64,000 nucleotides of DNA from Convolutriloba macropyga (Eukaryota): contig NC_134468.1 of NCBI RefSeq assembly GCF_964194025.1, positions 79,670,001-79,734,000 on the forward strand, written 5' to 3'. Of the stretch, positions 2,105 through 64,000 are shown one piece after another; position 1 is the stretch's first letter, and the number at the start of each line of letters is the position of its first letter. The notes below the pieces were generated by a model. The model saw nothing but the letters and a program-made list of their open reading frames with translations, was not told where the DNA came from and did not search any database. The position numbers and the translations under genes were made by a program.

Positions 2105-5100
2105 TTAGAATCAGTTATTGTGCAATTTTCCTGCGCATTTTTTTGTGTCGTTTCAATATTTTGAATGAAAATGTTTGCTTTAATCTCTGAATTTTTTATT
2201 ATCGCTACTGGAATTCAATGCAAAGATCTCTCAGGGAAAGTTTTTTTTGCTGTTTGTTGTTCGTTTCTCATATTTGGCCATTCGTCCATTCTTCGGTTGA
2301 TTGCGTCGAAAGAAACAATTGATGAACCACTTTTTTTTGTAGACGCTAAAACAAATTTTTGCCAGATTTGAGTTTTTTGAGATAAAAACCGCTGTCCTTA
2401 TGTGCCAAACAGCAACCGAAGAGCAGCAACCGAAAAAACATGCGTTGAAATTGTTATCAGTCATTTTCCAGTTTTTTATCAATCAATTTCCATTGTTATC
2501 AAGTTTTTTATTCATACTCTTTTTATTCAATATTTAAATAACTCAAATTTTTCTCTGAGTTATTCAAAAAATACTCAAATTATTTTTCACTCCAACTGAC
2601 TACGTTATAAGTTCTGTTGATCATAAGAAGATGAGCATATAAGGTTTTCAAAGTGAAGAAACAGACTCGCGAAAAGATTTTCCCGTGACCAATGATTGGG
2701 TACTAGCCAAACGCAAAATTTTTAAGGCATCACCATGAACTGAAAAGCAGAATTTTAGAGATAAAGACGAAAGACACTTTTTGTGAGACGAAAGCCGAGC
2801 TTCTTCTTTTGGGTCATCCATAAGTGTATGGCGAATGATCATGGTCGAGCTAAAAGTACAGCGTGAAAACTTTCTCCCAAGCTAAAGTCTCAATGTGCAT
2901 TCAATTTGAGCTAAATTCTTTTTAACACTCATCACTAAAAAAATACCGTATTTGGAAACTTACTTACTAAACATACAACAAACATACAATTTTTGACTTT
3001 GGCCAATAAAGAGTACAAAGAGCCTTAATTCACAAAGGCGCTAGAGTAGATTGAATGAAAAATTGATTACCAAAGAAGAAACAGAAAAAAGGATCACCAG
3101 AAAAATGCTATTGTAGCAACAAACTGAGATGTGCACTGCAAAAAGTTGAATCTGGAAACCGAAGGAAGTGCCTATTTTATCTCAGAAAAATCATATTTTA
3201 AATCACAATAGTAAAAACTTTGTTGATTTGGTAGAGGTTTTCCCCACTGTCTGTGAAGTATTCCTGACCAATGAAGATCTCCTGATGAGATCAAAGTCAT
3301 TATGAGCACTTGCCGTAGTGCACAAATCCGGCGTGTAATTTCATTCAGATAAGTTAGTCTCTAAAGGTCTTTTGTATAGAAATTGTTCAATCTAGTCACG
3401 GACTTATTCAAAGATTTTGAGTAGTATATTTTTTGATCACCTCTATTTGACTGTTAGCCATATAATACCAGATAGAACACATAGAACAAGTTATAAAGGA
3501 ATTACTTTAAAACAGGAGAAACAAAATTTGTAATAATTGCTCATTTCAACAAAATCGAAAAAAAGCAGAAAAAACCCAAACAAATTGCTTCAATTTCTTT
3601 CTTTTCTGTTTATGAAACGTCTCACTTATGTTCTTTTTATTCTAAGATTCATCAAAGCACAGTAGCAATACATTCGCTTGATAGATTAAGTATTCTATAG
3701 CAACTCAAATTTAGCTGCCTAACTTGCGTCAGAATGAATACAATTATGATTGTTTGTACATACTTAATATTCAGTCAAAATCCATTCTCGTCAAATCATA
3801 TATGATCTTTTATAGAACTTCCTTATGGTCTTTTGTACATAAAGTGACCTCAAGTTTTATGTCAGCACTGTAAAAATTTTTATATACTACTCATTTTAAC
3901 GCATTATGGTTGCTCAATATGAATGTTAACAGCATCATTGCTATCATCTTCAGAAAAAGAGTGTCTTTTAATTTTGTTTTCAATTTATTGACATACGTCA
4001 TCAAGGCTCCAAAGCTATTTTTAGTTGAAAAAAGTCTATGTGGGAACGAAAATAATTTATTAGCTCTTTGTTTGTACATAGTTGAAAGCCTCATAAAAAT
4101 CAAACAAGCAAGTAGTAATTTAATTTAACCAATGGGTGCTTTTATGTTATCTGATGAAAAATACACACTGTTTTCAATCAAAATGTAGCGCATATACGAT
4201 TGGTTACTTTGCCTTCTTTTTGAAACTACCCCTCTGTTTGTCTGAAGAACTTTGCTTTCCTGAGAAAAAAAATAAACTTTCACATTTCATCCAGATTAAA
4301 CAATGTAAAACAAAATCTCAGTTCCACGAAAAGTATTACAAAGAAAATATCTTGGATGAAAATTTCCCTTTATTCAAAAGCCACTGTTGGTTATTAAAAA
4401 TGTAAGAATTGGATTTCTTATGTTTTGGCCCCCTAGCTCAGTGGGCTTATATTTTTTACGCCACCAGGCACACTTGCTATTTTTTTTAGCAATGTGCTAT
4501 ATAACAATATATAATTTGTAACTGAGGGGCATAAAAAACACTGGGATGTCAAAACAGAATAGATCCCAACTTTTATTGACCTTCTCACTGACTTACAACA
4601 CGCGATTTCTTGATGACTTATAATTTAGAGAATAATTTGCCTGGTAGCCCATTACTCAAAATTCCATGACAAGCTAATTTGAGTAGAAATTTTTATATCA
4701 GTCTTGGCCCTCTTTTTTCAGTGTTGGGTTTACAAGCCCAGCAGGATCCGATGGTCGTGGAAAGGAATAAAAAAGAAATTTGTTCTTGTTTGGGTGATTT
4801 GCCTGTTCCCTGCAATGATCAAATAGACTCGGAGTCAAAATTGAAGAAACTAGCATTTGCAAGTCAACAGCAGAACGGAGACAACACCAAAAAAATGAAA
4901 ATTTGATTACAGGTGGGTTAATGAGAATCGTTGAGTGAAATTTATTAAACGAACAAAAGTCATATCAACTTTATGGGTCTTGATAGGAGGACTCATTTTT
5001 CAACATTTTATTGAGTGTTACTTTTCCCATTCGAACTTATTGTTTCCATTGCAACTAGGCTTGTCAGAAATAGAAGAGTTGTCCATATAGAGCATTCACA

Positions 5101-58705: not shown

Positions 58706-59759
58706 ATGGCGGCTTTAAATGCTTCTTCGCCGTTGCCTCCAAAAATGAACTATAAACGAGAAATGCGGTCCTTACATCAAGATCAAATTCAGCCAGTTCA
58801 ATCTCAAATATCTGCGCAACCTTTGTCAAATTTTGCTGAATCGTCTTTAAGCGCTCATTCTGAAACATCAGTTTCGTTATCACCGTTCCTATTCAGTAAC
58901 TCACCCCCAAAAGGTGGTGAAAAAATTGTCTTAGAAAATTTTCACAAAAATCAAACTAACTATGGACCTCTGACCTCTAGAGAAACGGCGCAGGAATCGA
59001 TGACATCGCGAGATTCGACACGATTAGCAAGCAGCAGCTCGCTTACTATTTCAAGTGCCTTTGCAGCTTCTCGAAATGGGTCTGAGAGCGAAAGCAGACA
59101 CCAAATGACCACCGAATCGCCCGATTCCGGAGTTGACACTTCGGTTATGGACACAGATCCCGAAATTGAAGGCCACGAAAACCTCACTGATAACCAGGGC
59201 CGTAGCCATAACCATAACATGGACCATAACGCGGAGTTCCAGAGCCATAGAAGTCTTCAAGGTCAGATGTCGCTCGGGACCGTGCCAGATTCGTCAACCA
59301 TAACGTCTGGTTCCAAACATATCGGTTCAAGTTTGACGGGGCTGATGAAGTCGAGGTCAAACTTTGACCTCTACAGTGACGCATCCCTTGTTATGAGTTT
59401 GAAACGGAAGTTGACAGAATCGCAGGAACATATTCATCCGTCTGGCCAGGCAATCGATTTCCATAACAGGTGTCCGGATCCCACTTGGACAATCAGATCC
59501 AGAAAAGGATCTCTGGCGCTCTCAACTTGCAGTGTGGGCACGAGCGACAGGGAAAATAGGCAGAGCTCGGATGGTCCTGACAGGTCTGAGCGGGATTCGA
59601 ACCCGCGCGTGGATGGTGAAGATGATGGGAGTGACGCAGACGTCGAGATGGGTTGCGCCGCTCTGGAGATCGAAGAAGGGGAAAGTGAAGACGATGGTGA
59701 CTATTGTGTCGAGGATAGACCTCCAACAGATGTGTCATCGTCACCCGATCTTCAGAATG
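58706..59759 (+). CDS. IKZF1: Ikaros-family zinc-finger gene, coding exon 1 (Ser/acidic disordered N-terminus)
   Basis: Long GC-richer ORF with an in-frame TAA just before the ATG; donor AATG|GTGAGA (phase 1) matches the acceptor at 60792. Confidence 0.75.
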
Positions 59760-59816
59760 GTGAGAGCACGCGCCCTATTTTCCACTCAGTAACGCACCGA
59801 GTGACACAAAGTTTGT

Positions 59817-59963
59817 GGGTCTTTCCCATTATAGCCCCCCCCCCCCCCCCAGCTTAGTGGTCAGATAAACTATACCCCCCCCCCCCAAATTCATGGTAAA
59901 CCTACCATAATAGGGGCTGGGGGCTATATTTTCGTGGGGAGAGGGCTATAATTGGAAAGACCC
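59817..59963. mobile_element. 147-bp MITE with 21-bp TIRs and an 8-bp TSD
   Basis: GGGTCTTTCCCATTATAGCCC / GGGCTATAATTGGAAAGACCC (1 mismatch); flanks AAGTTTGT / AAATTTGT. Confidence 0.85.
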
Positions 59964-60611
59964 AAATTTGTATCCACGAGACCATTAACACTCACTACAC
60001 GCTCTCTTTTATTACATTTTTTACTTGTTGTAAAAGATGTAACCCTTCCCCAGTCTTGGGGGGGGGGGGGGGTGTGACAGAATAGATCCGATCCCTTCTA
60101 GCACACGTGATTCATAATTGAGGGTCACAGAATAATTCGGGAATGATACACATTAGATAGCTGTGACACGAAAATGAAATTTGAGATCACTTCTGTTTCG
60201 GGGGATGCAATTCAAGGTTTTCCGAGGCTTATATTAATTCCACAATCAAGATAAGGATCTTTTTCGTTTGTGCCCCCCCCCCCCCCCCCCAGCTTAGTGG
60301 GTGCATATTATTTGCAACTCCCAGATGCACGTGCAATATTTTTACATATTCATAAGTTTGAAGTTCATAAGTTAGCATCACGGTAATGTGTTTTAATTGT
60401 AGTAAATTTGAAAGGGGTATTGTTTCTATTCGCTTGCTAGCTATGTACCAATTTTATTAAATTGTATCACTGTGATTTACGTACTATCATTTCTATTATC
60501 GGCATTTGTCCTGTTTGCGGCGTTAGTAATCTTCAATGATTGTGCTAATGTCTAATTAGGGTGCGTTCGCATTGAAAGTATTTGTTCATTTTGCTTAGTG
60601 AGCATGTTAGA

Positions 60612-60684
60612 GCCCTGCTAGCTCAGTCGGTAGAGCGTTGGACTTTTAATCCAACGGTCAAGGGTTCGAGTCCCTTGTGGGGCG
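60612..60684 (+). tRNA. tRNA-Lys (anticodon UUU)
   Basis: 73-nt cloverleaf: GCCCTGC/GTGGGGC acceptor stem, GCTC/GAGC D arm, TTGGA-CTTTTAA-TCCAA anticodon arm, AAGGG-TTCGAGT-CCCTT T arm; T-run Pol III terminator 5 nt downstream. Confidence 0.95.
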
Positions 60685-60792
60685 GGTATTTTTCGTCTCA
60701 AAAAACAATTCTAATTGAAAACAAGCAATGACCTTTTATAATCTTTTCGAATCCTTCCTTCGCAAAAGAAAACAAAAGTTGCCTGTTATCAG

Positions 60793-61367
60793 ACCGAACT
60801 CACACACCAATCAGCGTGTGCGATGACGTCACAAGCGACAGAGAGGAAGACGAGTTTGCGGGGGAGGGGGACCTTAACAAAGATACCAACGAAGAAGAAA
60901 TCGACAATCTATGCATTGACCAACTTCAAGCAGCCAATCAAATCGACTCTGCATCACCAATAATCAGAACCCATCAATCTCAAATCAGCCCGCACAACAC
61001 CCACGCAGACAGCAGACCAAACTCAGCTGAAATTGGGCAGAATTCGGGGTCGGCTTCCGGGTTAAACTCGCTCCCGAAATTACCGATTCCGATCAAATGT
61101 GGTGAATGTAACCATTCGTTTCACTCGAACGCCTCGTTTGCGATTCATCAGCGAAAACACACGGGCGAACGTCCCTTCGTGTGCGACGAATGTGGGCTAG
61201 GGTTCACCCAAAAGGGCAATTTGTCCAGGCACAAACAGACACACCTGGACAGGAAACCTTTCAAGTGTGACCAGTGCAGCTATGCTACTAAGAGGAAGGA
61301 CGCTCTCTTGACCCACAAGTCTACCCACTACCTCAACAAGAGATACAAGTGCACCTACTGTTCACAG
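60793..61367 (+). CDS. IKZF1: Ikaros-family gene, coding exon 2 (C2H2 fingers F1-F3 and first half of F4)
   Basis: HTGERPF.C..CG..FTQKGNL.RH...H...KPFKC..C.YA..R.DAL..H..TH matches Ikaros F2/F3; donor CAG|GTACCC, phase 0. Confidence 0.9.
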
Positions 61368-61721
61368 GTACCCTATTTAAAATTTGGCTTTAAGCTCTTC
61401 ATAGCTTCTCCGCCTCTTTTGTTTATATAGAGCTAAAACCTAACCCCCCCACTCCGAAGAAAAATCGTTAATTTAGTTTTTGTTTTTAAAAATTTTATTT
61501 AGGGTGGACGATAGTTAATTTCTTGGGGGAGGGGGGGGGGGGGGGATTATAGCTTATCCTTGCTATAAAAAATGTCATTTCATGAGCTTTCAAAAAATGT
61601 AATTAATTTTCGATGTATAACTTTAAACTTTAAAATTAAGTACAGTTTCTTAAGAGCTTATTTAGTTATAAAAAGAAATTCCTAACTGGGAGAAACAAAT
61701 CTACCATGTTTCAATGGAGCT

Positions 61722-63283
61722 AGCTCATTTTGACGCAAGTTTTAAAAGCCCAGTTTCAAAATCTGACACTGCAGAGATCTGACATTTTAGAAATGCTGTC
61801 TTAACAACTCGAACCGCTACCCTGTTCTCCTTAAAAGCTAGTTCTCAGTGACTTCACGTTAAGTCACGAAACCTATACTAATAAGCTAACCACCCTTTTC
61901 ATTTTTGTTCGATATATTGGACTTAAAAGTGCTCAAAAGTGAATTATTACCCCGCCATTAAGTATAGCGGGAGTTAAATGTTTTTTCGTTAAACTGTGTG
62001 AAAAATGAGGTTAATTTCAAACTTTAATTGTTCACACGTGGTGTGGAATTACGAAGCCGCCGTTATTTTCTCATCTGATGTTTTTATTAGGATATTAGTC
62101 AAGTCTAATTACTATTGTTGTGAGTAGGAGCTCAAAACACTTGTAGCAAACTTTATTTGTTACATTTCCAAAGTGTCATCTTGCGAAAATTTGGGAAATT
62201 GAGCTAACATGTCTAATTAAAAACAACAGCGCATCCATTTCCTAATATTAAAGCGGTGGAATAAATTGGCAAATATCGTACAATGATAATAAAAAGCAAA
62301 CAAAAGCGAAGTAACAGTTGCTGTTTATTTGTTTACGAGCACCCCGTTGTTTGTAAACAAGCCGGCAGCGACACAACATGTTGGAAAATGAACGACTCCA
62401 CTCGACAATTAAATTTAATGAAATGACTTTTGGAAAAGTAAATTAATTGGGCTAAAATGGTGTCCGCCGATGTGAAAATTAGCCGAAAAAGTCAAAACTA
62501 GGCCTATTAGCAGAATTAATTGCTGAGAGTAAACGAAACTAGGACGCGCAATTCTCTAACAAGAACTCCACCTTCTCGCTCAAATTTTTTGGGTTTTCTA
62601 GACCAGAATATAATGAAAAATGAGCTTCAGCTTCACAAAAGCGAAGAGCAGAGGCGGACAAAATTTAATTGTTGAAAACTTTTTGTTTAAGAAAAACAAA
62701 ACTACCCCGAATTCTGTGTACTTTAAATGCGTAGTCACCACTTGCTCATCAAAGCTTTCTATGAATGCGAATCTAACTGCGATACAGAACCGGCCTACCC
62801 CACATAATCATGATTCCCATGAAGAAAAAATCGAGCAGGAAAAATTTCGGAGAAAAGTTTTGGAATCAGTTTTCCGGAGTCCGGGAACACGACTTCGCCA
62901 ATCTTACAACGAAAACTTGCACGAAATGCATCAAAATTTTTTACCACCCCAGTACGACAAGATTCGACGTGGATTAAATTACAAACGATCAGAGTCCAGG
63001 CAAAACAATCTGAAAATGGTTCAATTTCATTTTTCATTCCTTATGTTCCCCTAATTCGTTTCACCAACGAAACGATAACAAGAATAACTTCTGAATTTTG
63101 ACACACTAAATGACCTCTTGTTTCGTAACCGTGCTAATAGCCGACCGGATCTTTTTTTGTTATGCCCCCTCCCCCTCCTCTGCCACGTTTATCAGTTGAT
63201 TTGCACCAGTTAAAAACTAAATTTTGCTTTTTCTAAAATCTGATCTTTATGATAACTTTTGACCTGCGTCACCAAAGTGAGGC
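61722..63283 (+). mobile_element. Putative internally deleted Mutator-like (MULE) DNA transposon with degenerate TIRs
   Basis: Left GCTCATTTTGACGCAAG..AGATCTGACATTTTAGAAA vs right TTTCTAAAATCTGATCT..CTGCGTCACCAAAGTGAGGC (imperfect inverted match); contains a FLYWCH ORF. Confidence 0.5.
62620..63054 (+). CDS. FLYWCH-type zinc-finger protein (N-terminal part of a MULE transposase), 144 aa
   Basis: SRGGQNLIVENFLFKKNK...VYFKC....CSSKL....PTPHNH followed by a helical region; no DDE domain. Confidence 0.7.
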   Translation: MSFSFTKAKSRGGQNLIVENFLFKKNKTTPNSVYFKCVVTTCSSKLSMNANLTAIQNRPTPHNHDSHEEKIEQEKFRRKVLESVFRSPGTRLRQSYNENLHEMHQNFLPPQYDKIRRGLNYKRSESRQNNLKMVQFHFSFLMFP

Positions 63284-63507
63284 TTTTTAAGGGATTTACA
63301 AAATTAATATAACTGAACATATTTTGGGTAGTATCAAGCCGACCCACTAAAATAATAAATGATACTTCTCGCCTATATATGCAAAAACTGATAATTGGGT
63401 CTTTGAAATGTTCAAGTCCAAATTAAGCATCGTTTATCAGTTTCAACCTTAGTTTTTTGTTCAAACTCTTTGAATTTGGTTCAGGAGATTTTTTTATCGT
63501 GTTTCAG

Positions 63508-63931
63508 GCGTATAAACAAAGACAGTCCCTGCGCGATCACTTGCGAGCATGTCATCGAGTGCCAAACGAGGAGCTTCGCGACATCCTCTCCGAAAGTGTC
63601 GCCCAAGTTCACCTCAGATCAGTCGGGCCCTCCCCCACAAACACACCATCGCCCTGCCCGCCTAGTGTGAACACCCCTCTCTACCCCGGTGCCAGACCCA
63701 CACCTCAGAATCACCCCTCGGGAACCCTGGCCCGAATGGGACTGGATCCCAAACAGGAACATCCCCAGATCCGGATGAGGTCTGGTCTGGATTGTGGGGC
63801 TGTTGGTAGTTTGGGTCCTATTGTGAGTGGAACGACCATCAGCCGAAGTGAGATTGAAGAGCGATTGAGGCTGAGACAACAACAGATCATGGACATTAAG
63901 CAGAAGTACGCAACTCTGCCGCCTATTGACG
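63508..63931 (+). CDS. IKZF1: Ikaros-family gene, coding exon 3 (completes F4; Pro-rich linker); gene probably continues beyond the window
   Basis: Acceptor TTTCAG|GCG, phase 0; AYKQRQSLRDHLRACH corresponds to Ikaros F4 (SYKQRSSLEEHKERCH); donor G|GTAAGA. Confidence 0.88.
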
Positions 63932-64000
63932 GTAAGAATAATTCCAGATCAATTTTTTAAGTTATTTTTATTGTCCTGACTTCAATTAAGACTCTAGTAG

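Follow-up and report, generated by a model that had tools for sequence, protein, structure and literature searches.

Gene structure

The 64,000-nucleotide stretch analyzed here (the window; NCBI RefSeq assembly GCF_964194025.1, contig NC_134468.1, positions 79,670,001 to 79,734,000) comes from the acoel Convolutriloba macropyga. At 58706–63931 it carries coding exons 1–3 of the four that make up LOC142343076, a real and intact Ikaros-type (IKZF1-4-like) zinc-finger transcription factor gene. A first-pass annotation made from the letters of the window had placed an Ikaros-family gene here, in an animal that looked non-vertebrate, as an acoel indeed is. Coordinates are window positions on the + strand unless a contig is named. 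The gene is laid out as follows, with F1–F4 denoting the four N-terminal fingers:

58706..59759, +, coding exon 1 with the start ATG; 351 codons and 1 base; open reading frame (ORF) after an in-frame TAA, GT donor at 59760
59760..60792, +, intron 1 (GT...AG); holds poly-C/poly-G runs and a nested tRNA gene
60793..61367, +, coding exon 2: an acidic stretch, then F1, F2, F3 and the first half of F4; Pfam zf-C2H2 and zf-H2C2_2
61098..61160, +, F1
61182..61244, +, F2
61266..61328, +, F3
61350..61367, +, F4, first half
61368..63507, +, intron 2, phase 0, splitting F4 between Gln543 and Ala544
63508..63931, +, coding exon 3: F4, second half (63508–63555), then a conserved region to ...QKYATLPPID
63932..64000, +, start of intron 3; GT donor at 63932
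70677..71836 (window-equivalent; contig C1 79740677–79741836), +, exon 4, the last, beyond the window end

The three exons within the window (1054, 575 and 424 nucleotides) are GT/AG-bounded and phase-compatible, and form a single open frame of 684 codons. The start ATG at 58706 has an in-frame TAA directly upstream; the GT donors lie at 59760, 61368 and 63932, and the AG acceptors end at 60792 and 63507. Exon 1 encodes an acidic N-terminal region that is rich in serine and has no known domains. It gave no match in a Pfam scan of the exons, in which the C2H2 fingers were confined to exon 2.

The 30 kb downstream of the window were searched for the C-terminal exon. Only one C2H2 finger pair is found on the + strand of this stretch, ∼7.7 kb past the window end, inside a long open frame that begins behind an AG acceptor 6.7 kb past the window end. 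The phase of this acceptor fills the codon left open by exon 3. Exon 4 encodes 386 residues, including the two C-terminal fingers (protein residues 1004–1054), and closes with a TAA stop 16 codons past the second finger. The downstream dimerization pair that the first-pass annotation had looked for, and whose absence would have spoken against an Ikaros gene, is thus present.

The four-exon translation is identical over 1070/1070 residues to RefSeq XP_075250880.1 (“uncharacterized protein LOC142343076”), from the start encoded by exon 1 to the C-terminus encoded by exon 4. The junctions proposed earlier, 59759/60793 and 61367/63508, are the same as in this model. The gene is therefore already predicted in RefSeq, but without a name. 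Reads covering the locus come from four runs of one study; they include the introns, as DNA reads would, and none is recorded as RNA.

Zinc fingers and domain architecture

The protein consists of four N-terminal fingers (F1–F4; residues 454–474, 482–502, 510–530 and 538–559) with complete zinc ligands, and two further fingers at the extreme C-terminus. F1 is preceded by ∼451 residues, in agreement with the unusually long N-terminus (∼450 residues) noted in the first pass, and is followed by a TGERPF linker. The finger helices quoted there are read in the spliced exons at the positions listed above: F2 is FTQKGNLSRH and F3 is YATKRKDALLTH, while F4 is split into CTYCSQ before intron 2 and AYKQRQSLRDHLRACH after it. 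The C-terminal pair bears the family motifs VMYTIH.G.H and then CN.CG...RYDFASHIARGDH.

In Ikaros proteins, contacts to an a/gGGAA core are made through F2 and F3, with F1 and F4 having a modulating role in binding (PMC5393059). At contact positions −1, 2, 3 and 6, F2 of the window protein has Gln, Gly, Asn and Arg, the same as vertebrate Ikaros (4/4). F3 has Arg, Asp, Ala and Thr, compared to Arg, Asp, Ala and Gly in vertebrates, so that three of four contacts are common and position 6 is Thr rather than Gly.

The C-terminal fingers of the Ikaros family dimerize, as do those of Hunchback (PMC5393059). Modeled as a homodimer, the last 88 residues scored 0.38, compared to 0.02 for the best control, with an interface within both fingers; contacts agreed by at least 71% between runs, and the predicted local distance difference test score was at least 62. 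The model passes the mark set for this score, which is reached by 21/30 proteins solved as one-chain pairs and by 0/23 solved as single chains; a pass may reflect memory of solved relatives, and it indicates likeness and not binding. When the same 88 residues were used to search a library of sequences, nearly all matching family members aligned at their own extreme C-terminus. The closest relatives are acoel proteins: Symsagittifera roscoffensis “hunchback-like”, Hofstenia miamia “ikaros/helios zinc finger” and a C. macropyga “uncharacterized protein”. A length-limited homolog search with the last exon matched only four unnamed ORF-style fragments.

Multi-finger proteins are abundant in such searches, which raises the question of whether the Ikaros likeness could be convergent, or due to chance, in a generic C2H2 protein. 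Poly-finger proteins such as ZNF568 and Aart do lead the summed scores in both the PDB and the sequence databases, CTCF also has a high total in the PDB, and a length-limited search with F2–F4 is swamped by poly-finger proteins for the same reason. These scores are totals over many fingers, and thus only single-stretch scores are informative; the best single-stretch matches in the PDB are Helios and Ikaros, and by identity only acoel proteins and Eos are prominent for F2–F4. Furthermore, the phylogeny (see below) fits the Ikaros family, as do the TGERPF linker and the order of the fingers, and the dimerization pair, a rare feature, lies at the exact C-terminus. The C-terminal pair and the tree effectively refute a generic C2H2 protein, to which we assign a negligible probability.

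Phylogenetic position

Forty family members were aligned over their N-terminal finger domain and C-terminal pair (∼160 columns) and analyzed by maximum likelihood under LG+C20+F+G4. The sampling is without cnidarians or lophotrochozoan Hunchbacks, and the power of the tree is limited. The window gene pairs with S. roscoffensis XP_063721715.1 at 100/100. Both belong to an acoel clade (100/97) together with a second C. macropyga gene on contig C5, the Symsagittifera “hunchback-like” protein and the Hofstenia protein. A larger group (80/88) unites the acoel clade with vertebrate IKZF1-4, amphioxus, Ciona and ambulacrarian Ikaros-like proteins, and a nemertean protein. Outside this Ikaros-type group lie Hunchback and vertebrate Pegasus. 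In a second tree, from which two very long branches were removed, Hunchback and Pegasus are split from all other sequences at 98/97. Arthropod Hunchback and vertebrate Pegasus are joined at 84/86 in the full tree.

Sequence identities agree with this topology. The N-terminal fingers of the window protein are 49–52% identical to most vertebrate IKZF1-4 representatives (46–56% overall), compared to 30–34% for Hunchback and 28–33% for Pegasus; the C-terminal pair is 51–61% identical to the vertebrate pair. The Pegasus helices ASAYERHLEAH and SDRSNLSHH are absent from the aligned window protein, which has four N-terminal fingers where Pegasus has three. A clade of acoel genes with Pegasus is rejected by the approximately unbiased (AU) test at p = 0.004.

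Another alternative is that the window gene is the acoel ortholog of protostome Hunchback. Hunchback likewise has four plus two fingers and C-terminal dimerization fingers (PMC5393059), NCBI has given the name “hunchback-like” to a Symsagittifera member of the sister paralog lineage, and a clade of acoel genes with Hunchback is rejected by the AU test only at p = 0.037. No separate Hunchback-type gene is apparent in the genome: arthropod Hunchback fingers, used as a query, gave the window gene and the C5 paralog as best matches. However, the Hunchback middle-finger helices (EYKHHLEYH, NKSMLNSH, KYCHSLKLHLRKY.H), and KYCHSLKLH likewise, are absent from the aligned window protein, which has the Ikaros forms QKGNL.RH, R.DAL and YKQ..SL..H in their stead. 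The identity to Hunchback falls well short of the ∼50% seen with IKZF1-4, and Hunchback joins Pegasus on the branch at 98/97 away from the acoel genes. We therefore regard orthology with Hunchback as very unlikely. The “hunchback-like” label of S. roscoffensis XP_063720623 misfits its position in the tree and is probably a misnomer.

Thus, as judged from its sequence, the gene is of the IKZF1-4 type within the Ikaros family and is neither Hunchback, Pegasus nor a generic C2H2 gene. The tree, AU tests, identities and finger alignment all bear out the family assignment made in the first pass, and the phylogeny proposed there as a check groups the gene with IKZF1-4. The suggestion of an Ikaros/Helios/Aiolos/Eos-type ortholog holds for the family; it does not hold for any single member, since the gene is the pro-ortholog of all IKZF1-4 and one of two acoel paralogs.

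Several observations weigh against this assignment or narrow what follows from it. In the full tree, the Ikaros-type group receives moderate support (80/88), and the AU test rejects the Hunchback grouping at a borderline level. F1 and F4 differ from their vertebrate counterparts at all contact positions; given these and position 6 of F3, the exact DNA site may differ from that of vertebrate Ikaros. A regular-expression scan found no PEDLS-type CtBP motif in the window protein or its S. roscoffensis ortholog. No RNA run covering the locus was found, where transcript and junctions are known as a predicted model, and the data have no bearing on cell type or biological role. The PEDLS CtBP-binding motif is common in the Ikaros family, and is not a defining feature of it.

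Other family members in the genome

The second Ikaros-type paralog (LOC142339553, XP_075245799, 734 residues) lies on contig C5 at 65580018–65582122, and the locus is identical over 284/284 residues to the C. macropyga “uncharacterized protein” found among the closest relatives of the C-terminal pair. It is without F1 and encodes F2–F4 in one open frame within one exon, and hence without the intron in F4. It contains a PADLS motif; the same scan also found a PEDLS/PADLS motif in the Hofstenia protein and one vertebrate representative. Fragments of the C5 finger exon (82–93% identity) are located at C2109:850-1029, C16:5280947-5281069 and C8:2152121-2152293.

A third, very divergent family member is located at C15:12827507-12832669. 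Its N-terminal fingers, also four in number, are atypical, and a long insert follows the first of them; the C-terminal pair is degenerate, with HFHCS at the end of the last finger. In the full tree this member lies on a branch too long for placement, and it is one of the two sequences removed from the second tree.

The window gene belongs to a pair of acoel-specific Ikaros-type paralogs, of which it alone is seen to keep all four DNA-binding fingers. Its lineage has gained the long N-terminal extension and the intron inside F4, and the gene is without the PEDLS-type CtBP motif kept by the other paralog lineage.

Conservation in Symsagittifera roscoffensis

The S. roscoffensis ortholog (XP_063721715.1, 961 residues) has the same four exons and the same intron within F4, such that the phase 0 intron reported inside this finger is kept in a second genus. 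The joint of exons 3 and 4 (...PPID|GALSRR...) is common to both proteins, and exon 3 is 56% identical with its ends kept. Identity reaches 95% across F1–F4 and 90% in the C-terminal pair, compared to 36% in exon 1 and 49–57% elsewhere, which indicates purifying selection on the fingers. Within the divergent exon 1, blocks such as TTESPDSGVD and IRSRKGS.ALSTCS are kept.

This conservation also bears on whether LOC142343076 could be a correctly predicted but silent or decaying copy, an unexpressed paralog without function. The lack of an RNA run at the locus and the fragments of the C5 finger exon on C2109, C16 and C8 would be in keeping with such a fate. The four exons are open, however, with intact splice signals and zinc ligands, and the ortholog in another genus is likewise intact, its fingers being 90–95% identical while the linker regions have fallen to 36–57%. 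The absence of RNA runs reflects the data on offer and not silence. A silent copy is thus very unlikely, and we retain an intact Ikaros-type gene as the interpretation of the locus.

Elements within the introns

Two further features are nested within the introns:

60612..60684, +, tRNA-Lys(UUU) with a T-run downstream, in intron 1 (ARAGORN)
62620..63054, +, stand-alone ORF of 144 residues with a FLYWCH zinc-finger domain, in intron 2 (Pfam PF04500, E 4.9e-07)

A tRNA-Lys(UUU) with a downstream T-run, identical at 73/73 nucleotides, is also found in intron 1 of the S. roscoffensis ortholog (positions 4413–4485 of its locus stretch). The intronic position of the tRNA has therefore been kept across the two genera, while its flanks have diverged. 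Intron 1 also contains, at 59838–59862 and 60274–60302, at least 12 C followed by AGCTTAGTGG, in addition to other poly-C/poly-G runs; these are probably the ends of a repeat element.

The FLYWCH ORF does not belong to the Ikaros-type gene. It is one copy of a dispersed repeat, for which the genome contains at least 51 matches (best identity 84%), many of them with stops, and it is probably transposon-derived.

Proposed function

We are highly confident that LOC142343076 encodes a 1070-residue Ikaros (IKZF1-4)-type transcription factor that belongs to an acoel paralog pair and would act by the mechanism of its family. We infer its DNA specificity, dimerization, partners and biological role by analogy. 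F2 and F3, judging from their contact residues, would recognize an a/gGGAA-like core, with F1 and F4 modulating the choice of site. The two C-terminal fingers are predicted to form homodimers and, probably, heterodimers with the F1-less C5 paralog. Such a dimer could then recruit chromatin regulators and so switch developmental gene programs.

Evolutionary implications

An amphioxus Ikaros-like gene was described in 2007, together with those of tunicates, hagfish and lamprey (PMC1784065). In databases, hemichordate, crinoid, starfish, sea-urchin and Hofstenia proteins already bear Ikaros- or Helios-like names, and a nemertean (Tubulanus) protein has Ikaros-type fingers; literature searches on Ikaros with acoel, Hofstenia or protostome returned nothing. 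As Ikaros-type genes are already annotated in many invertebrates, the window gene says little new on the lymphoid or immune regulatory kit, and the bearing on its origin claimed in the first pass is weak and overstated. The gene is a sound and fairly ordinary find, since invertebrate Ikaros-like genes are not new.

What the locus does provide is a name and a likely mechanism for a RefSeq “uncharacterized protein”, and an example of the full four-plus-two layout, with vertebrate-like F2 and F3 contacts, in Xenacoelomorpha. The presence of this module there implies that it is far older than lymphocytes, and it is thus no marker of an immune kit. Acoel paralogs with and without F1 could show, in regenerating worms, how finger number and dimerization shape the choice of targets.

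Acoels may be sister to all other bilaterians. A broader possibility, which we consider rather doubtful, is that the Ikaros type is the ancestral bilaterian form, with Hunchback a paralog from the Pegasus lineage or a derived gene, and not the IKZF1-4 ortholog as commonly assumed. This idea arises because acoels and the nemertean Tubulanus have the Ikaros type, acoels have no recognizable Hunchback, and Hunchback groups with Pegasus. There is a hint here that Hunchback may not be an IKZF1-4 ortholog, for which 40 sequences and 160 columns are too thin a basis for a claim. Were the Ikaros type ancestral, the window gene, as the sole four-fingered acoel copy seen, would best represent the ancestral protein, and together with its paralog would constitute a natural full-length/F1-less dimer pair.

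Comparison with known systems

The window protein shares with vertebrate IKZF1-4 the four N-terminal C2H2 fingers, the TGERPF linker, the F2 (QKGNL.RH), F3 (R.DAL) and F4 (YKQR.SL..H) signatures, and the location of two dimerization fingers at the very end of the protein. It differs in being twice as long (1070 residues), with ∼451 residues before F1 and an intron within F4, and in having Thr for Gly at position 6 of F3 and no PEDLS motif. The C-terminal fingers read HLGLHSK in the window protein, compared to HMGCHGF in vertebrates.

The Ikaros-like proteins of invertebrate deuterostomes (amphioxus, Ciona, Ptychodera, Asterias and crinoids) have the same four-plus-two architecture and fall in the same group of the tree. 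In contrast to the window protein, they are 392–641 residues long, have no extended N-terminus, and have C-terminal fingers nearer to the vertebrate form. Arthropod Hunchback and Pegasus (IKZF5) are similar in their two-domain layout and homologous C-terminal dimerization fingers (PMC5393059), whereas their recognition helices are different throughout, the N-terminal fingers of Pegasus number three, and both lie across the 98/97 branch.

The closest comparison is with the other acoel lineage, consisting of LOC142339553 (XP_075245799), S. roscoffensis XP_063720623 “hunchback-like” and H. miamia WGZ76179.1. These proteins are 64–68% identical to the window protein in F2–F4 and 59–65% in the C-terminal pair. 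Unlike it, they are without F1 and shorter (436–734 residues), and the Hofstenia and C. macropyga members, the two that were scanned, carry the PEDLS/PADLS motif.

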